DNA of 63,277 nucleotides, filler included, from Perkinsus chesapeaki ATCC PRA-425 (taxonomy: Eukaryota > Protista > Perkinsozoa): assembly GCA_013115145.1 (NCBI GenBank). It is 5 parts of 5 records of this genome, joined end to end, with 100 filler letters (N's around TTAATTAATTAA, not from the genome) between each part and the next. Parts side by side here need not be neighbours in the genome. Positions count along the whole stretch, not along the records: positions 31,929 to 46,219 come from JAAPAO010000756.1; 4 more parts are not named here. One strand, given 5' to 3'. Every line of letters starts with the position of its first letter. Position 1 is the first letter of the stretch. Shown here piece after piece: positions 31,829 to 46,319 of the stretch. The notes beneath the pieces were generated by a model. That model was given only the letters and a program-made list of their open reading frames with translations. It ran no database searches and was not told the origin of the DNA. A program made the translations under genes and the position numbers.

Positions 31829-33655
31829 NNNNNNNNNNNNNNNNNNNNNNNNNNNNNNNNNNNNNNNNNNNNTTAATTAATTAANNNNNNNNNNNNNNNN
31901 NNNNNNNNNNNNNNNNNNNNNNNNNNNNCAAAATATCTTCAGGAAGCTGTGTGGCCGTCCCCGCTGCCTCCAGAATAGCAAAACCGTCCAAAGCGCGTGG
32001 CGCTCGTTTGACGAATACGTGATTGAACCTTCCCTGTGACCTGATCAACTGCCCTACTCCACGCTCCGTACTATCCATTCATACCCTTGTGTCAACTTTG
32101 TTAGATTTAAAGGCTTGATGGGTAACGTAGATGCTTTATTAATTGGACTGTTTGAATTAACCGGCTGCATTTAGGCAAATATGATAAAGAATAGCTGTCC
32201 TTGGTAATAACGAAGACCCTACAACCTCGTATGTCCTTGCCACATCTCGCCCATAGAGTTAGGTTGAAGTGCGCGAGTGGCAGAGGATAGGGAAATTACC
32301 AAGCCGAGGGAGGATACTAAAAGCATATACGCCAGAGTTCATTTACATGTCACCGCCAAATTCAAACTGATGGGGATGTCTCGAAATAGAACGTACGAAA
32401 GTCTGTCCCCCCCAAACAAGCGTTTCCTATCAAATGTCATCCAACTTGTAAGGAAATGTATGTTGTCTTTGATCACGGGCAATACATGAGCTCACAGTAC
32501 ATCACGATTCTTCCGCTCAAAGGGGGTGGCCGTTATCTTCGACTTACGCTTCTCCCTAACATCTCGGGCTTTATCCTTCAGCGAGTCCTCGACTACTCTC
32601 AGCGACTTGGAGTAGCTGCAAGTTTTCGCCGTAAGGATTGTGAGATACACCTGGCGCTATCGGAGTATCTTTTTTCATCTGTCGCTCGCCTTGAAACCGT
32701 AAGATTCCCTGCTCCGTTACACTACAATATCTAGTCGCCTCGGGCCCCGATTGAAATATTTCAGCAACGGCAGCTGGTCCAAGTCCCGTCCAAGCTTTTA
32801 CCGAAGGAAGCAAAGCTAAGAGGATTAAAAGACTCAAGAGACGATATTATTGGCCGCAGCCTAAGAACAGATGGATGTGATTGTTGTGTCGTGCTGTATT
32901 ACTCGTTAATAAGAAATGTTTCAATTGTTGTCCCTCGGGATTTACCCTGATTCCCGACTCGGGAATCCCGAGTCTTCAACAGCCAAATAACTCCTAATTA
33001 AACGTATCATGGGTTTGTCCACCGGTCCATCCTGCGGCGCCCCCCATTCACTACAGTTCGACTGTCCGGTAGTTGCAGCAGTCCGCAGCAATCCGTGCTC
33101 CCCCATTGTAGGATATGCGACATGCGAGGCGTCGATTGGATACATCTCTAACCCAATCGACGTAGGTATGGAAGATGATGTATGATAATGAGTATGATGC
33201 TGACTAGTGCCCTCCAGTGTACCATGGTTCTGCGCTAATAGTTTAATAAGGTTTTCCCAAGTCCCTTGTATTTATTCCAAAGCCAGCTCTCATTTGTACT
33301 TCTTGACTGCCGACACCAATGAGCTGAACAGCCATTACATGACCATGAAAACATGTGACTGAAGCTTACTGGCCAGCCCGTTACTACATCCGTTCTGGCC
33401 CTTTTATTACCCTTGAACGCTTGGAGACGTCTCACGCTTTCTTGACATGCACTCTAATGACTGCGTTGTGATCACCTTTCAAACATTCGAAAAAACAAAT
33501 TGTTAAGACGCAGCGACTATTTTCGTGGCGCGCGGTAATTTTAATGCTAAGCCGGGATCCAAAAATTCCGTGGTCCCTCCCGAATTTACTCAAGAACTCC
33601 TTCAACGAACTTTACCCCATTCACTTATACAGCCCCTTATTTCTTTGCTTTCCTT

Positions 33656-36607
33656 ATGGGTAATCGTCCAGTATTCCCCCCATTCCCTTGTTCATATGAG
33701 GTAGGTATCCATTAATAGACAGCATCCATTATCGACATACAGGTCCCTAATTCAGCAGTGCCTGGTGTGAGCGGTCCAGTGTACCGTCATCCGGACCATG
33801 TTGAGCAGTTGCTCAGCCATTTCGAAGGAGAGGACGGTATAGTTACTAGTTTTGATGTGTTTAGGGATGTAAGCTATATAAGCAATGGTCGGGTGTTATT
33901 TAGTTCTCAGGCGGCGGAGAGATACCCTGATCGCCCCTGTCATGGTACACGTCCATTATTAGATGATGGTGGTGTTGGACCTTTTGAATGGCAAACATAT
34001 AAAGATGTTTATAATAGAATAGTTAATTTTGGTAGAGGTATTGAAGAATTAAATCTATTATCTGATGATGGTTCAATGAGATTAATTGGTTTATATATGA
34101 AAAATAGATCTGAATGGGTTATTGCTGAACAAGGTGCATTTACTAGAAGGGCAACAACAGTACCATTATATGATACTCTTGGAGAAGATGCCGTTGAATA
34201 TGTTATTAACCAGACCCTCTTGAAGACTGTGATATGTAGCTCCGAGGAGATCCCCAAGCTCCTAGCCTGCAAGCCCTGTTGTCCTTCTCTCAAATGTATA
34301 GTGTGCCTCAATACTACCGAGTCCATTCAAGCGTCCTGTGAGGCTGCTAACCTTGAACTCATTGACTTCCATCAAGTGGAAGTCTGTGGGTCTGTTGTTA
34401 CCTATGAGCCTTTGTCCGGTCAAAGCTTGGATATTGGCACTTTCTGCTACACCAGCGGCACTACTGGTGTTCCCAAAGGGGCCCTGCTTAGTCAGGGAGG
34501 GATGCTGGCCAATATCGCAGGATTGACGGAGTTCGTCACCACTAAGAGCCCGCTTATTGATTTTGGTTCCACCACCGAGACCTATCTCAGCTACTTGCCT
34601 CTGGCCCATGTAATGGAGCGTTTGATACAGGCGATGATGTACCACTTCGGGGCAGCTATTGGGTTCTCTCAAGGTGATCCAAGGAAGATAATGGATGATG
34701 TTCGAGCTCTCAGACCTACCCTGTTTGTTGGGGTGCCGAGAATTCTCAATAGGATATATGATGGTGTTGTGGCTGATGTCCGTAAAGTTGGCGGAGCGAA
34801 GCAGGCCATATGTGAAAGGGCCCTGAAGGAGAAAAAGGAAGGCCTTAGCAGAGGCTTCATAAAGCATCCTATCTGGGACTCTGTGGTTTTTAACGGTATT
34901 AAGGCCAAGTTGGGGCTAGACCGTGTCCGCTTGGTTGCATCGGGAAGTGCCCCACTGGCGTCCTATGTCCTTCTGTTCCTGAGGGCTCTATTGGGCTGCC
35001 CAGTTGTGGAAGGTTATGGTCAGACTGAGGCGACATGTGCGGTCAGCTATGGCCACATGCATGATTTTACTGTGGGCCATGTCGGACTGCCTGTTGGGTG
35101 CCTTGAGATCAAACTGGTGGACGTGCCAGAAATGGGGTATAGATCAACTGATACTGAACATGGTAAGGAGGAGGAGGGTTATGTGGGATACAGAATTCAG
35201 TGTGTAGGTGGTGATGCTGGTGGTGAGAGTATGGAGTGCAAGGGTCGAGGCGAGATATGCTATAGAGGTCCGTGCACCTTCAAAGGGTAGACAGCTCGAT
35301 ACGGTTATGGCTGTATAGAAGATGTCATTGATAGATACTACAAGATGCCAGATAAAACCGAAGATACTATCGATACCGATGGTTGGGTTCATAGTGGTGA
35401 TATTGGTATTTGGTTGAAGGATGGACAATTGAAGATTATTGATAGGAAAAAGAGTATATTTAAACTAAGTCAAGGAGGTAAGCAACATGAATATGCCGTC
35501 CTTTGCGTTACCTCTGGTTTCCCTCTAGAGTACATAGCCCCTGACAAAGTTGAGAATACAGTCGTCGAGTCGCCATTAGTCGCTCAAGCCTTCGTCTACG
35601 GTAACAGCTTCCAGTCCCGTCTAGTTGCCATAATAGTACCGGACCTAGAATACTTGTTGGAGCATTTCCCGAGTATCACGACCGGCATTAAGTAACGTTC
35701 TAGACAGTCTGGCTGCCGGTTATGGTTCTTCAGGAGCTCCGAGGAGCTGTGTAGTGATGAGGGTGTTAGAAGGCTCGTTATGAGGAGCATCAATGACGTT
35801 AGCAATGAGGGCAATAAACTTAGGGGATTTGAGAAGGTAATCAGCGGCTGCGGTGGTCGGTAGCAACGTATGGACGTCGACGACCTCGAAATATTAGTAT
35901 CAATGTCCAGGTATATTCAGTAGAACTGCAGTAGGGTGGTGATGCAGCTTTGAGGGCATAATTTCGAGCAGTAGAGCGTTGACAGCTGAAAGTTTGTGGT
36001 TGAGTGTTGGTGCTGATTTCGAATCCGTGGCCTGGGCATAATCCCAAACGACTATGAGCTATACTAGGTTCACATTTATTACATGTCATTTAGTAGTAAG
36101 GCTCATAATGCCGAATAACGTGTTATTGTTATCGATGGTAACTTACCCTCTAGTGTCCTCAACTACATACAGTAGCTACTACTAGCAATTTTTCATTGTC
36201 CAATGGTGATAACCTTCTGAGCGATCCTCAGCCTTTTGCCGTCAAACCACAGTTTGTCTAATACAGGGTTAAGTTGAGGCTCTAAGGCTTTCTATCATAG
36301 CGAGCTTGGCCGTACAGTGCCTTATAGCATTCGGTGGCTGAACTAGACCGTCTGGTCGATCTCGTTAATGTGTAAGTTTTCAGGTTAAAGCAATTCATTT
36401 GACACCAGCGCCGTTCACTATTGACAACGGCCTTTTGACGCCTTCCTTCAAGCTTAAGAGGGAAGTTGCACTTCAAACTTATCGACAGGAGATCAATGCC
36501 CTGTATGAGGAAATAGGGGATAAAGTAGTAGCCTTCGTAGCCTCCTCCAGCTGTCCAACGCCTACTGCTCTTTCAAGGTATCCAATGGCAGCCTTATTCG
36601 TCAATGA
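33656..36607 (+). CDS. ACSL: Long-chain acyl-CoA synthetase (AMP-binding), paralogue 1
   Basis: YTSGTTGVPKG, SYLPLAH, VEGYGQTE, GDIGIWLKDGQLKIIDRKKSIFKLSQG|EYIAP, LLTPSFKLKR; last exon VSNGSLIRQ* parallels paralogue 2. Confidence 0.95.
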
Positions 36608-37027
36608 GACTCAACTGTATCTCATTTTTTCTGCTGCAGTCTGTGTGCTTAGCAGCATTTTTGCCTCTGACGCCTCGGCGTTATTTCTTTTATCATCATT
36701 CGTCACGATGATGATTATTGTCTAGTATTCTTGACACCTCCTTCACCGCTTCTTGAGCCTTCAACTTGAGGGCTTCTTTGACATACTTTCACACCTTATG
36801 TTTGTCTCCATCACACCATCATTCCGCTTTGCGTTCTGTCATCATCATCGTCGTTAACAGTGAAACTAGGCGCGAAGCGACGGGAAAATGAGTTAACAGT
36901 AAAGTGTGATGCGCCGCCGCACCGTTACTCGCTCGCCTGTGTAGTGCAAGTTGCATGAAAAGGCTATTTTGGGCTGAAGTTGCGGAGACGCTTTCCAATT
37001 GAAGTTTTAGTGAATCTCTGCAGTTAA

Positions 37028-38062
37028 ATGGCTCGCAAATCATTCAGCAGCATCTTCGTTGCCGCCACTCTGTTTGTGGCTCAACTGGTAGGCGCTACTA
37101 AGTCAGTTTTAAGTTGTAATATCGTTGGTGTTTCAGATGGGCGCCGTTGAGGCCCGCAAACCCAAGGTGAGGTTGTAGACCATCGAAATGCATGTTCAGA
37201 CTTTATTAGGCCCTCGGTGTCTGCTCCCTGAATCATCGTCATTTGAGTGTTGTCAAGATCAGAGCAAACGAGGGCACAAACGTTCTTAAGAAGGCTTGGA
37301 ACCGTCTCCGCGGCAGGAAGCACATTGACAGTCGCATGCCACATGTAAGGGTCGTGAATGATAGCCACAGTATAGTGCTGATCAGGTTGAATTCGTCCTT
37401 GCTGAGGGTGAGGCACTGTTCACCTCGTATTTCTCTCGTGGTGAGCAGAAGCACTTGGAATCCGGCAAGTCTGGCGACATGATTACCCTTACTGGTGGCC
37501 CGGCAAAGCTGCCAACTCAAGACATGAAATGCCGTATCAGAAAGAGAGGTGACAGGCGTAACGTTGTAAGGAAGCTCGGAGCCTCGGTAAGTTACCGCTA
37601 AGTGTTTGTGATGATCATCTTATCGAGCAGATTGGCGCTATCGGCTACCTCGATGACGGTCAATGGCGTTTCCTCCAGCCGGACTACTCCAAGGGCGATA
37701 CTGTGTCCGTTGGATATCTCAATGTTCGCTCTGAGGAGACCGTTGGGACCGTCTACTTCCGCCGTGGTGAACCTTCAGTGCACATGGATGAGGATAAGAC
37801 GGTCATAGCCGACAGCACCGACAACACCCAGCACAAGCTCGCATTCGTCCACTCTGAGGCCGCTAAGAGATTCTATGACGCTATCCATTCCGTGACGGAG
37901 AACGACGTTTTCGGCAACACCGTCTCTCGCAGCCAGGTGGGTTTGAATCGTTTGTCAGCGTTTGAGGAGTATCTATAGGTTGGCGGTGACGGCTCAGCTG
38001 TTTCGACTGATGACAGAGATGCCTTGGAGCCTTCTGATTTCGAGGTAGATAACAGCCAGTAG
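37028..38062 (+). CDS. Hypothetical secreted protein (5-6 exons)
   Basis: In-frame splicing gives MARKSFSSIFVAATLFVAQL|MGAVEARKPK|...HKLAFVHSEAAKRFYDAI...DNSQ*; signal-peptide-like N-terminus. Confidence 0.6.
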
Positions 38063-38358
38063 TAGTTGTAGACTTTCTATCAGTAATCATTCGAAGATGT
38101 GGAGTGAAGGTTGATGAAGGAATGTTTATCAAATTGTGTAGAGCAGCATGTTAAGTGTAGATGTGGTGTATTAATCCAATGTTGCGTTTTACAAGTGAAA
38201 ACGAGGGACAAAATGAATAGCAAGTTGCTGGAATCGCGAGACGATAAAAATGAAAGTACGAGGAATAGAATGGGTAAAGAAATAATAGAACACAACAGTG
38301 CATATATTTAAAAGCTGTCTTCAGCAAACTGTCGATGAAAAAAATAAATGGTGATGCA

Positions 38359-40898
38359 TCAGTCATTTTGATGAAGGTTTTCTTTACCACCAACCTGGAA
38401 AATACATTAGTAAGGTCTGCAGCTGACGTGAAAACTAACCTTGTCGCCGATCTCTCGGTACATGGCGTCGATTTCCACCTGGAACTTGACGGCAGCGACA
38501 TTGCGCTTGAGTTTAAAAGACGGCGTTAGAATGTCATTCTCGACGGTAAAAGGTTCGGATATGAGATAAATATCTTTGACCTAAAGGGAAATAATGACGA
38601 TAGTTGAAACAACAGCTCTTCAATGGACGGCCGGGAGTTATACTGGATAACATCCCCACAGTGAATTAGGGTATTAACAGCAGAAGCACACGAGAGTCCT
38701 TACCATTTCGAAACCCCTAAGTTTTCCGGCGGTGGACTTTTCCTCGATACTGGTCATGATGGCTTTTTTGATGCTCTCCTCTTTACAAAGAGCAGCAGGA
38801 TCCCTAATGGAGATGTACGTGGATGAAAAAGGCATTATAAGCTTACATCTTAGCATCTTGCATGTTGGGAAGACTTTGAAGGTTCTCGAAGTCAGGAACT
38901 ATGATGGCCACTAAACAGGACTGGAAGCTGTTACCGTGGACGAAGGCTTGGGCAATAAGTGGGGATTGTGTTATGACATTCTCGACACGTTCGGCAGAGA
39001 CGTATTCTGAAGCAAGACAGAGATAACGCAGAGGAAGGCATACTTGTGTTGCTTACCTCCTTGACTTAGTTTAAATATACTCTTTTTCCTATCAATAATC
39101 TTCAATTGTCCATCTTTCAACCAAATACCAATATCACCAGTGTGAAGCCAACCATCGGAATCGATGGTATCTTTAGTTTTATCTGCCATCTTGTAGTATC
39201 TATAAATAACGCACAGTGTAGAATTGACAGTAGAGTAATGGCTCACCCTTGGAAAATCGAGGGCCCTTTAAGACACACTTCTCCACGGCCTTTACACTCA
39301 ATCGCATGCTCCCCCGTACCTGCCAATAAAGTGCTGATCGATGATCCTACTCACCAAGTGGTCCTACCGTGCTGGGTATCAGCTGAAAAGTACTCCAACT
39401 CTGGCACATCCTCAAGCCTAATTTCGAGACACCCTACAGGCATGCCGACATGGCCAGATGTGAAGTCATGAAGATGCGAGTAGCTCGCCAGACAGGTGTT
39501 CTCAGTTTGACCATACCCCTCGGAAACTGGGCAACCGAAGAAGACCCTCAGGAAGTCCATAACGTGAGCGGCAAGTGGAGCGCTACCACTAGCAACAAAT
39601 TGAACACGTTCGAGGCCGAGTCTAGCTTTGATCTTATTGAACACCAGCTTGTCCCAAATCGCGTGCTTCAGCACACCTTGTTCAAGCCCGGCCTTCTTCG
39701 ATGCCAATGCCTGCTCAAACAGATAGGCCTTGAGGCCCCCAGCGGCCCGAGCACCCATAGTGATCTTGTCATGAAGACGGTTGAGCAGTCTCGGAACAGA
39801 TACAAAAATTGTAGGCTTCAATGCTGCAATGTCATCCATAATCTTAAGAGGGTCTCCTTGATAAAATCCGATAGCGACGCCTAGGTGCATGAGACTGATA
39901 CTTACTAGCCTCTCCATGATATGAGGCAGGGGCAGGTAGCTAAGGTAGTATTGCCCAGAGCTGGTGATGTCAAGTAGTGGGCTCTTGGTGGTGAGGAACA
40001 TCACTATAGAGCTCATATTGGCCACCATATTTCCATGAGAGTTCATGGCACCTTTGGGGTCGCCTGTGGTACCACTGGTGTAGCAGAAAGTAGCGATATC
40101 AGTGCTCTTGCAGACCAAAGGCTCGATATCAACTTCGCTACCTTTCTTCTCGACATCACTGAAGCTGTAGAACTGCAACCCAGCATCTTTGCAGTCATTG
40201 AGGACAGTCTCTGAGCATGCATCGGGATCAACACATACAAGGGTGCTTAGAGTGGGGCATTCGGCCTTGCAAAGGATAAGTCTAGGGATTTGAGATGCTG
40301 TGCAGACCACCGTCGTCAATAGAGTCTGGTTCACGATATAGTCGACTACATCTTCCCCAAGAGTATCATATAATGGTACTGTTGTTGCCCTTCTAGTAAA
40401 TGCACCTTGTTCGGCAATAACCCATTCAGATCTATTTTTCATATATAAACCAATTAATCTCATTGAACCATCATCAGATAATAGATTTAATTCTTCAATA
40501 CCTCTACCAAAATTAACTATTCTATTATAAACATCTTTATATGTTTGCCATTCAAAAGGTCCAACACCATCATCTAATAATGGACGTGTACCATGACAGG
40601 GGCGATCAGGGTATCTCTCCGCCGCCTGAGTATTAATACAATAATCTTCCAAAACGCACTAGCATCAGACACCCTACTTTCTTGAACACGGCGGCGCTAG
40701 TAGTCAAAGTCTCGTCGCCGTCAATAAAGCTGATGAGACCATCGGCTGCTGCAGTGTTCCTATAGATGGGACCGCTCTTACCTGGTACAGCGGAGTCGGG
40801 CACCTGAACCACAAGCATAACCATTACGACCATCTTGGAAAGCAGCTCACTTCATATGTGTACGGTACTGGAGGAGAGACAGAGATGGAATTACCCAT
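38359..40898 (-). CDS. ACSL: Long-chain acyl-CoA synthetase (AMP-binding), paralogue 2
   Basis: YTSGTTGDPKG, SYLPLPH, SEGYGQTE, GDIG..IIDRKKSIFKLSQG, ILTPSFKLKR, ending VGGKENLHQND*; starts MGNSIS. Confidence 0.95.
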
Positions 40899-41279
40899 GG
40901 GGTAAACGAGGAAACTTATGAGAAGCTAGTGAGCTCAGAATCGTGTACTGAGCTGGGAGAGTTGTGCAAGAAAGGTAGTTCAGCAATTGGAGTGCAGCAC
41001 CAACTCACTCCAACATCCACAATCGTGCAAATATTATTCTGTCCGGAAGCTTTTTGTTGAGTTCCAATTGTGCGCATGCTTAATCTCGGAGGAGCGTTAT
41101 GCACGCATGCGCTCCGTGTCACAATGCGCAGAAACGGCTAGTCCAAATTTCAGCGAATCCAAAAAACAGCGAATCAAAAAACAGTGAAAGATACCCAGAG
41201 AGAACAGAAAAGAGCGAGCGCGTAGCGCTCGCCAGGAAAATCCGTCCAAGTTTCAGCGACGTGCGCATGCGTGCACGTC

Positions 41280-41340
41280 GCTACTACGCAGCTACTGCGC
41301 ATCTACACCTGGTGTAGATGCGCAGTAGCTGCGTAGTAGC
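41280..41340. repeat. Perfect 61-bp palindrome (30-bp arms, 1-nt centre)
   Basis: GCTACTACGCAGCTACTGCGCATCTACACC-T-GGTGTAGATGCGCAGTAGCTGCGTAGTAGC. Confidence 0.97.
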
Positions 41341-41589
41341 GTGTAGTACACCACCGACATGAGAGTACATGATATGAGATATGAGAGTACATCCGATGCA
41401 TTTCGTCGCAAATCAACGTCGGAATGCAACTACATGGACCGTTAGACACCTGCTGTCCATGAATCTTGAGTTCTGACGAGTTTGAGGCTACAAATTGTAA
41501 CTTCTACTCTAACCGTCAAACTTTCGCGTTACGCGACTCGCGTTTGCTGTAGTATACGTCGTGTACTTGTCACACATATCTGCTTGTAA

Positions 41590-42036
41590 CGTTATATGAG
41601 TTTCGTCGCAAGATTTGCTTTCGCTGGCATGAACTACGGCGCGTATTTCCCCCCGAACTGGACTTAACACAACAAGTTGTCAACAACGCAGAAACACAAG
41701 GACTGAAACCTAGGGAGCAAATGCGGGCCAGCTCGAGACTGTTGTTTGGACAGTCCAGGCTTCACTATTTTGAACACTCGGCTTCAGACTGTCGGAAGAA
41801 AAGACCACTAGGTGAGTATCTGACAACACACAATAGGAATAGTTACGCTCTAACCTAAAAATTACTTACTTACGATGTACCAATATCATAGCTGAGGCAA
41901 ATGCTATTCTCACAGTCTTGGTGACCAGCGATAATAAATATACTCGTTTCCCGGAGTGCCAGGCTAAGGGATGTTCCCCATATGTTATGCCGTACAACCA
42001 ACTGGCGTCGTATCAAATCATAAACGATAATATATA
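41590..42036 (+). CDS. Possible coding exons of an unknown gene, cut off by the AT-rich island
   Basis: Open frame YEFRRKICFRWHEL...RKKRPL splices (GTGAG...ATAG) in frame to AEANAILTVLVTSDNKYTRFPECQAKGCSPY; no family recognised. Confidence 0.3.
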
Positions 42037-42620
42037 ATAAATATATAATATGTAGTATTAATTAATAATACAAAAGTTATAAAATAATATAATTACCTCA
42101 TTGCACCAATTACATAATAGTAATACATTATTAATTATATATAATAAATCTATATATATTTTATATAGGCCCTGCTATAACATATAATTATAATAGACTG
42201 CAGGGCCATGATTTATATATTATTGATTGTAGTATTATATATCATTCCTTATACATTATTATATCTAGTATTATATTGAATAAATTATACTATAAGGATA
42301 TATATCTAATATTCATGGTATAAATAATATTAATTAGGGATATATAAACTAAATATAGGATAATCTATAAAAAATATTAGCAATAGAGATATTAATCTAA
42401 TTAATATCCCAACATATATGATATTAATACAGGTTATAAACTTATAATATGTTATAATATATATATTCCTAATTAGATGTAATAATAATTATAAGGTATC
42501 TATTATAGATCATAATGCTATATTTATAAATATACTAGATGATGCTATAATAGAGACTAGATACATGGTGTATGGACAATAAATAATACTCTAATATATA
42601 TAATGACTATAGATAGAAAT
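42020..42620. other. AT-rich island (~82% AT by manual count)
   Basis: About 107 G+C in 600 nt; no CpG seen between ~42027 and 42623; sharp boundaries. Confidence 0.9.
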
Positions 42621-43193
42621 AAACGGCTAGCCGTTAGTTTACACATTGATACTATCAATATGTAAATTAACCGCTACTGTTTTGTAAACCTTACGCATAT
42701 TTTGGTTTCGAATGAATACTTGCCTGGCCGCCAGGCAAGTATGCACTTGCGCCGCAGGAGTTGCGCCGCAAGTACTACTCGAGCAGCAGTTGTTGATTCC
42801 TATCACATGTAACCGGCGGGATCCGACGATCATCTACAAAAACCCGGAAACAGTAAATTGACAACTAGTAACAAAACGACAGTACATCAACTAGAAAGGA
42901 AAAATGTACGATACTGAGTACGATTGAGTAAGAAACTTAATTTCCGAAACTGATTCATCCAATTGGTCAGAAACGACTACTGTCTCTTCAGGTTCAGCGT
43001 AAAAAAGTCAAACCTTTTGACAAGCTATTCAACATCTCATGAATCAAGAACCCTCATGTGTGGCTATTATGCTGATAGTAACATTGTAGCTATAATAGCA
43101 ACACATCGGGGGGTCCCGATACCATTATAGTATTACCTTGATGCGATGCTAGGCATAAAAGACGCATATCGCTATGCAAGAAGGAAGTTCCTT

Positions 43194-44500
43194 TCATTGC
43201 CCCATTGAAAGGTCGATAGCTCTTGACCGACTGTACCACAGATTAGTAACTTGTCGCATATGATCGCTGTTGCCATGAAGTGTATGGTGGTAGTGTACGC
43301 ACCAACACATACCGGAAAGCACACCATTTCGTGGATATAACTGATCGTATGAACTTACTAGCACACAACGACGTGATACAAAATCCCACACCCTGATATC
43401 GCTGGCAGCAGTTACCAAATATCTGAGAAAAGCAGTAATAGACTCCGACAGGTACGAGCTCTCTACCCAAGGGGCCGGGAACAAATCGAACACTAGTAAC
43501 CTCGCCAGTGTGGCCTTGTAAGACATCATCGTTGCGATACTGTTTTGCCAAATGCCATGAGCGCGAAGACCAAACCTGACGAAAACGTCATACCGACAGT
43601 TTCACACACTGCGAGGAATTACTCTAATTTCCCATACAAGAGCTGAAAACGAATCCTCTTCCCTTCACTAAACTGCTTATTGCCTTTATAAGCGATTCAG
43701 TGATGGGCAGCAGACTCGCAAGAATGACGTAATACTATTACGTAAACTTTTCCATCCGAACCTCCGGTAACGAATTCCTCTGGCTCGTTGGGATTCCAAT
43801 CCGACGAAAGGTGGATCAGGAAGTCGAATGGATCATCGGTCGGAACCTGCAAATGAACAGATCTAAGCTAATGTCATCAAGTACTCAACATACAGTATAG
43901 TATACTGAGTATATGCGCAAACTGCGCCGCGTGGAACAGTATCGTGCGAAAAAAACAGCTCGATCTTTAAAGTTCGACTATTCTTTGAGCCCCCCAATGG
44001 TACCCTAAAGAATTCTTTTATCCTCCAATCGATTGCAGACCATGATTTGACGCTACCATCAAGAGAAGTGCTCAAGAGCGTTGTCATGCGACTGTTCATA
44101 GACATGCTCACGATCTCATCATTGTGGGCATCTATTGTCTAAAAAGCAGAAAATACAAGTTTTCGATTTGAACGTAGGCCATACGTTTATGATAGCACCT
44201 CTTGCGAGGTCCAAAATTTTAATGGTACCCATGAGTGATACTCCTGCTGCGAGGAAGAGCTTTTGATCGCGCTTAACGAACTTCAGATTCGATACCTGCA
44301 ATGAAGATTTAGTAATTTTCTGTTGGGGGTATTGATTGACTTACAGATAACGGAGTGGATACTTCGAAAGACTCCGGCTGGGAGATTTGCATTTGAGTTC
44401 CTTGGAACGAGTAAACGCTTACATACCCCTTGGAATTGGCCACCGCGATCTGAGAGATGGACGCGGGACGTCTATGAATATAATAATTGGATTCCAATTT
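43194..44500 (-). CDS. WD40-repeat protein (one splice or frame anomaly); ends approximate
   Basis: Spliced: GTIKILDL...IDAHNDEIVSMSMN...LLSTSLDGSVKSW; FVTGGSDGKVY|VWS; GHTGEVTSVRF...YLVTAASDIRVWD. Confidence 0.7.
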
Positions 44501-46319
44501 GCATTGAAAATGTAAGGCTCTATTTAGATGAGGGAGTAAGAATGAGAAAAAAATTTTTGATAAAGATTACTTAGGTAGAGCTTTACGTAAGGCAGAATAG
44601 AAAAGGTAAAAATAGAAGCGGACCTTATAAAAGCGCAAAGCGAGAAACTACCCCGTCCCTAATAATACCATGGTGTTGAGTCCATATTCGACTGTGTCCA
44701 AGGTTTGAACATCGTAAATGTCCTCGGTAAAGATAGCATTAAATGCAGCGCACATAATGATAACAACGAAAGTGATGTTCGAAAGGTAGTTGTCATTAGT
44801 AGTTCAAACATTAAAACTAAATTTCGCTTAATTTTGGTTGGGAGCAGAATGAAGTCGCTGAATCTGTTTTCGCTGAATCTTGGTTTGTCAGTTTTCGATT
44901 AGCGGGGCGTGCGCAAGTTGCATTTGCTGATTTTTGGATTCGCTGAATTTTGGAAATACCCGCAGAAACCACTTTGGGAGTTTATATTTTCTAATATAGT
45001 TGTGAATTGTAACACCTGAGCTTGCAATACCGAGATATTCAACACTTTATGGGACGCAGTTGATATGGTTGCAGAATAAAGGATGGATTTGATACATTGC
45101 ACAAGATATGCGATACAATGTCGCCAAAAAAAGAACACGCAAAACCCTTTACACGAGGATAGTCAAGGAACAGTGACCCATACACGGTTGCTATAAGGTA
45201 TGCGGCATAATGGAGATAATGATCAAATGAAACCTGTTCTCAGTATGGTCTCCGATCTTGCGGTATCTATCTTCGCCCGTTCATCACTGCAATGCCCGGC
45301 GGCGCGCGGCGCTAGGTACCCTGTGGCTCCGAACCAGATCCTCGTAATGACAGCTCGAACCTTCCGCATAGGTAACCCTCCAATGCTCAAGCGGGACTGA
45401 TAGTAGCGAATGAGTCAATGACTCAGAGTCATTACTAATGACCCAAGTAAGTTACTAATAGTAACCCGATTCTCATCGTGGGAACAAACTATGACAAAAA
45501 ATTCTCAAACTTAGTGGCCATAGAGACTCTGTATGCAAGCGCGATGAGTTGTTCCACTGCGCCGCGTAAAACGCGGCGCGTTTGCGAAAAGCGCTCGAAA
45601 AGCAGCGGGCGACGCGGATGCGACAAGTGAATAGCCTGAGGTTATGCCATAACCGTTATGAAGTAGTGCTCTAAACCAAGGAGTAATCAATGAACAGAGG
45701 ACAGGCTTGGGAACCTTCGGCTCGCACACCTTGTGCGGGTAATTTCCAGAATATGGTTACTAAGAATTGATACAGGGCGGCGCCGAGGCTGAGCCGGAGA
45801 AGCTTGGCCCGATAGTACAGAGAAGTAATACTTCCGACAGATAGAACTTCTATTATCTATACTGCTTCTGAAGTATAGGAGTAGACAGGGTAGCGTAAGT
45901 AGCTCAATGATCCTCAGGGCGGAGAGCCGTTGAGTTACACTGGTGGAGGTCGACCATCGATACGCGGTTGACGAGTATGAATCAGGTCGCCGCTACATGA
46001 TACGTATCAGTGAGGAAATTTGGACACTCGACCGTAGTGCTTCGACGGCTAGGCAGATTGTACATCGGAAGGTTTTTTGGCATTTCCAATGCACCCAATG
46101 AGTCAGTGAGCTGAATAGCAACGAGACTTTTGTTACGAGAGTGGTAGTGATGTCGTGTGCCCACTAGGCATGACGAGTTATGATGATAAGTTATGTAGGT
46201 TTCAGTATATCTGCCTTTTNNNNNNNNNNNNNNNNNNNNNNNNNNNNNNNNNNNNNNNNNNNNTTAATTAATTAANNNNNNNNNNNNNNNNNNNNNNNNN
46301 NNNNNNNNNNNNNNNNNNN

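Follow-up and report, generated by a model that had tools for sequence, protein, structure and literature searches.

Synonymous A/T recoding of homogenised tracts in predicted long-chain acyl-CoA synthetase paralogues of Perkinsus chesapeaki

Conversion domains are known in the globin genes, in the ACS genes of Plasmodium falciparum, and in other tandem families. Gene conversion is widely held to be GC-biased, and GC-biased gene conversion (gBGC) is a main explanation for the variation in base composition among eukaryotes. In yeast, clustered C-to-T changes arise in resected single-stranded DNA during double-strand-break repair. Here, we describe a locus of Perkinsus chesapeaki, a perkinsozoan protist that parasitises clams, that can be set beside each of these systems, as well as beside repeat-induced point mutation (RIP) and methylation induced premeiotically (MIP) of fungi. 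It lies at positions 31929-46219 of a 63,277-nucleotide (nt) window, in a 14,291-nt piece corresponding to one contig of a fragmented assembly, and contains two convergent genes, A on the plus strand and B on the minus strand, whose products are predicted to be of the long-chain acyl-CoA synthetase (ACSL) type; a third paralogue, C, is found on a separate contig (locus L003). Two segments of these genes, tract 1 at the start of exon 3 and tract 2 around exon 5, are homogenised among the copies, and in P. chesapeaki both have been shifted toward A/T. In tract 1, every degenerate G/C-ending codon over a stretch of 84 codons has been replaced synonymously, with remnants of only 1/80 in A and 3/79 in B, as have most such codons in tract 2.

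As in described cases of interlocus conversion, paralogues of one species resemble each other more closely than orthologues of different species do, but only inside a bounded segment, where the homogenisation extends to synonymous sites and to some intron bases; outside it, the sequences follow orthology. The borders of tract 1 are stable over three species. Unlike in those cases, the P. chesapeaki tracts have lost essentially all of their synonymous G/C, and this has occurred in one lineage. The locus shares with gBGC a one-directional shift in composition at near-neutral sites of converted tracts, to which a fixation-bias model is applicable, but here the sign is reversed, with G/C content at third codon positions (GC3) moving to 0, the effect is seen in one of three congeners, and the bias is one that we infer. 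The rise in GC expected from GC-biased conversion is absent, as the P. chesapeaki tracts are AT-shifted against a background of about 0.5 and those of P. olseni and P. marinus show no consistent shift. An earlier note on this DNA had described a homogenised tract between inverted ACSL paralogues running opposite to GC-biased conversion, and the comparison of the three species bears this out. With RIP and MIP, the locus has in common an AT enrichment restricted to duplicated DNA with fairly sharp borders, and the two AT-shifted stretches are indeed the two homogenised tracts, with low GC3 extending about 45 codons further in C. It differs from them in that the ACSL copies are identical and retain functional-looking reading frames, the changes are synonymous only and include transversions, and the RIP indices are negative; moreover, we know of no RID homologue in alveolates. 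Recombination-associated mutagenesis of the kind seen in yeast could likewise supply G/C-to-A/T changes in DNA that recombines often, but it is known as a somatic or experimental signature and is not known to have brought about the complete recoding of a coding tract in evolution. Gene segments that evolve in concert are a familiar phenomenon, whereas conversion tracts recoded in full to synonymous A/T endings in a single one of three congeners are not, and a literature search found no report from Perkinsus of RIP-like processes, of codon recoding, or of gene conversion, AT-biased or otherwise.

Tract 1 is approximately 283 nt long and corresponds to residues 58-150 of the products. In A (33911-34189, plus strand), it opens with exon 3 itself and closes with the GAT codon of ...LGED, and in B, it occupies 40347-40625 on the minus strand. 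Aligned with BLASTN and MAFFT, 33900-34231 (+) and 40636-40308 (-) are 94% identical over 332 nt. The near-identity of 33906-34190 (+) and 40349-40630 (-), reported in the earlier note with one codon indel and two substitutions, is confirmed: within 33911-34189, the only differences between A and B are an indel of a GGT codon and the substitutions GCT/GCC and GGA/GGG, compared with 65-72% DNA identity between the two genes outside the tracts and 63% identity between their proteins. The identity begins at the 3' splice site of intron 2 (ctcag/GCG). By exon mapping, this intron occupies 33869-33910 on the plus strand in A, so that its 3' end is the 5' border of tract 1, and the intron 2 sequences of the paralogues are unrelated. 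The two copies recognised at the outset stand, in A and B, but the count was too low, as there are at least three, in addition to variants in other samples. Paralogue C (P0007) carries the third at L003:10243-10549, and B and C are identical throughout tract 1 (L003:10248-10530) plus two more codons.

Within tract 1, the A/T-ending patch starts at a TGT codon in A (33938-34189, plus strand), where GC3 is approximately 0, and spans 40350-40598 (minus strand) in B. In the rest of the coding sequence, GC3 is 0.489 in A and 0.509 in B, and the corresponding binomial probabilities for the patch are 3.7e-22 and 3.6e-20. An exact recount of the codons in 33953-34189 reproduced what had previously been counted by hand, with 74 of the 75 degenerate codons ending in A/T, Leu encoded by TTA in 7/9 cases and Arg by AGA in 5/6, and no CpG. 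Both A- and T-ending codons occur for each amino acid, with no single preferred codon. GC1 of the patch is 0.47, compared with 0.51-0.52 in P. olseni and P. marinus, a slight drop that comes about through synonymous CTN-to-TTA changes at Leu codons, and GC2 is unchanged at 0.41-0.44. The use of both A and T, together with the pattern at first and second positions, indicates a compositional bias rather than a preference for particular codons. The 3' border is sharp, and the abrupt return of G/C-ending codons with an intact frame, as originally described, is seen within 1-2 codons past GAA GAT; the reading frames of A and B are unbroken, the copies are >98% identical, and the products match a Pfam family. 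At the other end, the first nine codons of the tract (33911-33937), among them a P. chesapeaki-specific GCG GCG, retain G/C endings although they are 100% identical among the copies. In paralogue C, GC3 is also low (~0.30) for about 45 codons past tract 1 (L003:10550-10690), a stretch that is not homogenised with A or B and for which the P. olseni C orthologue has a GC3 of 0.60-0.70. A periodicity scan for other patches with GC3 near 0, covering 27 kb of P. chesapeaki and 69 kb of other species, returned the ACSL tract copies only, the P. marinus matches being a (GTA)n microsatellite and an N gap.

The ACSL cluster is also present in P. marinus (L001) and P. olseni (L002 and L004), and the segment from the first base of exon 3 to GED is homogenised in both. 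The P. marinus paralogues are 95.9% identical along 315 nt of it and the three P. olseni copies 95-99%, compared with approximately 65-70% identity between paralogues in its flanks. Each species has its own version of the tract, with 94-99% identity within species and about 75% between them. In each of the three species, paralogues share 0.9-1.0 of their third positions in tract 1 but 0.2-0.5 in the flanks. Both at the N-terminal exons and downstream of the tract, A, B, and C each cluster with the orthologues of the same gene. Judged by these alignments, the tracts are interlocus gene-conversion domains undergoing concerted evolution, and because tract 1 and its borders are common to the three Perkinsus species, the conversion domain is older than the radiation of the genus. 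GC3 in the same codons is 0.00-0.07 in P. chesapeaki, 0.45-0.52 in P. olseni, and 0.31-0.57 in P. marinus; on these values, the AT recoding is specific to the P. chesapeaki lineage among the three species compared. Low GC3 in sister species without paralogue identity had been named in advance as an outcome that would count against the idea, and what was found is the opposite, as the paralogue identity is present and GC3 is normal.

Polarisation by sister-species orthologues, which the earlier note had proposed, yielded a clear direction of change. When synonymous third positions at which P. olseni and P. marinus agree are taken as ancestral, 20/20 G/C sites in tract 1 changed to A/T on the P. 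chesapeaki branch (C>T 9, G>A 7, C>A 4), while 0/28 A/T sites changed to G/C and 4/28 exchanged A and T. In the rest of gene A, 46/100 G/C sites changed to A/T and 15/43 A/T sites changed to G/C, so that tract 1 differs from it both in G/C losses (Fisher P 1.8e-6) and in A/T losses (2e-4). The A-T interchanges point to gradual turnover rather than to one event. The amount of third-position change in the tract is about that found elsewhere on the long P. chesapeaki branch, and it is the direction that is abnormal. Amino-acid divergence in the tract is 9.5% between P. chesapeaki and P. olseni and 9.3% between P. olseni and P. marinus, compared with 28% and 20%, respectively, in the rest of the gene; the tract values fit the species tree, which makes a distant donor unlikely. 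At third positions, P. olseni and P. marinus have diverged by 0.28 in tract 1 and by 0.54 in the rest of the gene; in these two species, synonymous evolution is slower in the tract.

Tract 2 runs from the 3' splice site of intron 4 through exon 5 and 20 nt into intron 5. It is located at 35332-35497 on the plus strand in A and at 39037-39202 on the minus strand in B, and the same segment is present in C. The three copies are 90-100% identical, intron bases included, and the homogenisation of these intron bases indicates that the copying was DNA-templated, at least in tract 2. All three P. chesapeaki copies have an exon 5 GC3 of 0.27. The corresponding value is 0.68-0.73 in P. olseni, whose copies of the exon are homogenised to the same degree, and 0.57-0.59 in P. 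marinus, which shows no such homogenisation. Thus, both tracts are AT-shifted in P. chesapeaki, and the less homogenised tract 2 is shifted less.

Independent evidence for the tract comes from Logan contigs of X1, the likely source run, and of X2 and X8, which represent a second sample (S2) with the same organism label, and from a contig of X10, an RNA run filed under another organism label. Contigs from X1, X2, and X8 connect the unique flanks to the tract, and the depth of the tract unitig relative to the flank is 248 versus 84 in X1 and 195 versus 60 in X2, approximately threefold, which matches three genomic copies. The grouping of the A, B, and C flanks by orthology further argues that the contig is not a chimera. 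An extra variant of the tract in X2, present as a 200-nt contig at about twice the flank depth, carries 10 substitutions and 6 extra letters relative to window positions 33955-34126. The changes listed for it are G>A 3, T>A 2, and C>A 1, and they include G>A at the first and the second position of codons. Upstream, AAT AGA CCT takes the place of the GAT CGC CCC of A, B, and C, making the variant even more AT-recoded than they are, and it retains two codons that they have lost. Sample S2 (X2/X8) also has a G>A variant at 34118 (Val to Ile) at 28-65% of depth. The copy number of the 3' half of the tract in S2 seems to be above that of the source sample, although summed contig depths overstate it. 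In X10, a contig of 213 nt matches the A/T patch at 93% identity and continues upstream, from a junction at 33910/33911, into exon-2-like sequence. This junction indicates a spliced transcript and confirms the splice site; the transcript may derive from a related Perkinsus in a host sample.

We favour, with a probability of roughly 0.5, an AT-favouring process coupled to interlocus conversion as the cause of the recoding. Such a process might consist of heteroduplex mismatch repair that is biased to A/T, the reverse of gBGC, or the changes might instead originate from deamination-type mutagenesis of single-stranded recombination intermediates. Either way, every A/T variant that arose would be passed on by conversion to all copies, a form of molecular drive, and a population-scaled bias of about -4 would be sufficient for the GC3 of about 0.01 that is observed. 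Purifying selection kept the protein while synonymous G/C was lost. The more sweeping formulation, in which P. chesapeaki has a homology- or recombination-coupled, AT-directed drive that erases every synonymous G/C in repeatedly converted DNA while selection holds the protein, is put forward tentatively, as we rate it at somewhat below even odds. The still more AT-rich tract variant in X2 lends support to this explanation, and the earlier proposal of an AT-mutagenic process acting on paired repeats under protein-level selection stands in so far as the change is directional, synonymous, and confined to the tracts, while the mechanism named there is not established. Several observations weigh on the other side. 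P. olseni and P. marinus convert tract 1 with no AT shift, and this unbiased conversion means that a lineage-specific factor must be assumed. At its 5' border, the patch sets in as a step without a gradient, with nine G/C-ending codons followed by 84 A/T-ending ones within a region that is 100% identical, and tract 2 includes 20 homogenised intron bases that are not rich in A/T. In addition, the evidence consists of two tracts in one gene family, and saturation masks the mutational spectrum.

The step-like border inside a fully identical tract would also be expected if the patch had been copied from elsewhere, with an ACSL paralogue of the P. chesapeaki lineage that is functional and rich in A/T at third positions, residing for example in an AT-rich compartment, donating 33938-34189 to A, B, or C before it spread. 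Together with this border, the AT-richer X2 variant, whose A/T-ending codons reach further 5' and which keeps two codons lost from the others at about twice the flank depth, keeps the donor model alive, and the low GC3 of paralogue C beyond the tract and the 18% GC AT islands on the window contig are in line with it as well. A third, AT-rich donor had been suggested from the outset, but none was found. The protein database holds only three P. chesapeaki ACSLs of this clade, and a search for further paralogues in a 50%-cluster library gave unnamed representatives and no usable lead. With the tract alone as the query, an SRA k-mer search returned P. chesapeaki runs and one 93% identical RNA contig and nothing else, and a protein search returned only a P. 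olseni fragment that is a C-like copy at a contig end; a scan of JGI metagenomes for a tract donor gave relatives at <=44% identity. The agreement of the tract protein with the species tree also speaks against a donor, and the model merely shifts the question, as a donor GC3 near 0 under protein constraint needs the same explanation. We therefore consider a donor unlikely. A lower probability still attaches to lineage-specific selection on the nucleic acid, favouring, for example, weakly folded RNA, slow decoding, or particular melting and chromatin properties of the DNA, with conversion only keeping the copies alike. The nearly exceptionless A/T endings and sharp borders fit such selection, the recoding changes the predicted folding energy from -76.5 to -52.1 kcal/mol, and the slower third-position evolution of the tract in P. 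olseni and P. marinus, at half the divergence seen elsewhere in the gene, hints at some synonymous constraint. However, the folding z-scores (-1.2 and -0.8) are not different from shuffles, the tract has no match in Rfam, no one codon is favoured per amino acid, and the tract, at residues 58-150, lies away from the translation start. The need would, moreover, have to arise in two tracts, both of them exactly conversion tracts, in one species only.

The RIP-like mechanism put forward in the earlier note, taken here as one in which homology is sensed independently of recombination, cytosines are deaminated by a RIP-type or methylation-deamination defence, and non-synonymous hits are purged, fared less well and is, if anything, a little less probable than selection on the nucleic acid. 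The AT shift is limited to repeated segments and leaves the unique flanks unaffected, and the patch has no CpG. Perkinsus has an uncharacterised CDD/CDA-type deaminase for which a DNA-mutagenising activity has been suggested (PMC3239186). A weak hint comes from a search with a gypsy polyprotein, in which the best 120 matches include several from P. marinus and P. olseni and none from P. chesapeaki; as this covers annotated proteins only, the absence proves little. Set against these points, the classical RIP indices are not those of RIP, with TpA/ApT at 0.74 (criterion >0.89) and (CpA+TpG)/(ApC+GpT) at 1.65 (criterion <1.03), values that are confounded by coding constraint and saturation. Of the 20 synonymous G/C losses, 4 are transversions (C>A), and A-T interchanges occur too. 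The copies are intact and identical with no decay, and GC1 and GC2 are preserved save for the synonymous first bases of Leu codons. The repeat is only ~280 nt long, its first 27 nt are untouched, and among the marine protists of the Marine Microbial Eukaryote Transcriptome Sequencing Project (MMETSP), RID/DNMT4-type enzymes have been reported from diatoms only (PMC9998398). By far the least probable is an artefact, in the form of a collapsed or chimeric assembly or of synthetic, codon-optimised, or other contaminant DNA. The tract does look back-translated and the 14.3-kb contig belongs to a fragmented assembly, but the three copies carry natural differences and sit in flanks consistent with orthology. 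In each of two samples, the depth of the tract is three times that of its flanks, and there are sample-specific variants. The spliced, 93% identical transcript in a run under another organism label, together with the depth, the second sample, and the natural variants, largely rules this candidate out. A single version in a single data set and free of genomic context, as is typical of synthetic DNA, is not what is seen here, and the collapse or chimerism that had been named as grounds for doubting the tract was not observed, as contig graphs join the flanks to it.

The gene models rest on annotated proteins that were mapped back onto the window with exact placement. Paralogue A (FOL47_010106, P0001) spans 33656-36607 on the plus strand and encodes 693 amino acids in 9 exons, with introns of 42-50 nt apart from one of about 550 nt. 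Paralogue B (FOL47_010108, P0005) spans 38359-40898 on the minus strand and encodes 694 amino acids, also in 9 exons. The orthologues of A are P0003 in P. olseni and P0004 in P. marinus, and that of B is P0006 in P. marinus, where the layout is likewise convergent. The products of A and B match the AMP-binding family PF00501 of Pfam (E 2e-69 and 7e-67), their translations contain the P-loop motif YTSGTTGxPKG and the C-terminal motif GDIG...LKIIDRKK, and their nearest named relatives are long-chain-fatty-acid--CoA ligases; the assignment of both to the long-chain acyl-CoA synthetase type within the AMP-binding superfamily is a prediction on these grounds. None of the remaining open reading frames of the window contig matched a Pfam family.

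In P. olseni, the annotation at L002:14367-21423 merges B and C into a 1405-amino-acid product with two AMP-binding domains, which is probably a gene-model error. In the P. marinus A gene (L001:11545-12209), a (GTA)n run of about 560 nt lies within an intron, and after it come a gap in the assembly and a second copy of part of the exon before the intron. Adjoining the P. olseni ACSL cluster, at L004:2501-7522, is an intact 1673-codon open reading frame for a Ty3/gypsy polyprotein with reverse transcriptase, RNase H, and integrase. On the window contig itself, a perfect palindrome with two 31-nt arms and a 1-base spacer is found in intergenic DNA at 41279-41341, with the start codon of gene B some 400 nt downstream of it. 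Further along, at 42020-42620, is a 600-nt AT island with sharp borders and a GC content of 18%, compared with 45% for the contig otherwise. The island is TA-rich with short internal inverted repeats, and its indices (TpA/ApT 1.01, (CpA+TpG)/(ApC+GpT) 1.12) give no clear RIP signature. Comparable islands are present in P. marinus, and none was seen in the P. olseni loci examined.

If an AT-favouring process coupled to interlocus conversion is indeed at work in P. chesapeaki, fungal RIP would no longer be the only such process described, and a clear case of genes being recoded by AT-biased interlocus conversion would be on record for the first time. The locus amounts to a natural experiment, in which one conversion domain is shared by three congeners and has been driven to a GC3 near 0 in one of them, and this contrast makes the question testable through the comparative genomics of repair genes and with existing Perkinsus transfection reporters. 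Should the cause prove to be a reversed repair bias or recombination-coupled deamination, it would mean that the bias of conversion can flip sign between close relatives. Such a bias could fully recode synonymous sites, which would bear on the inference of codon usage, on tests for selection, and on how the AT-rich genomes of alveolates are understood.

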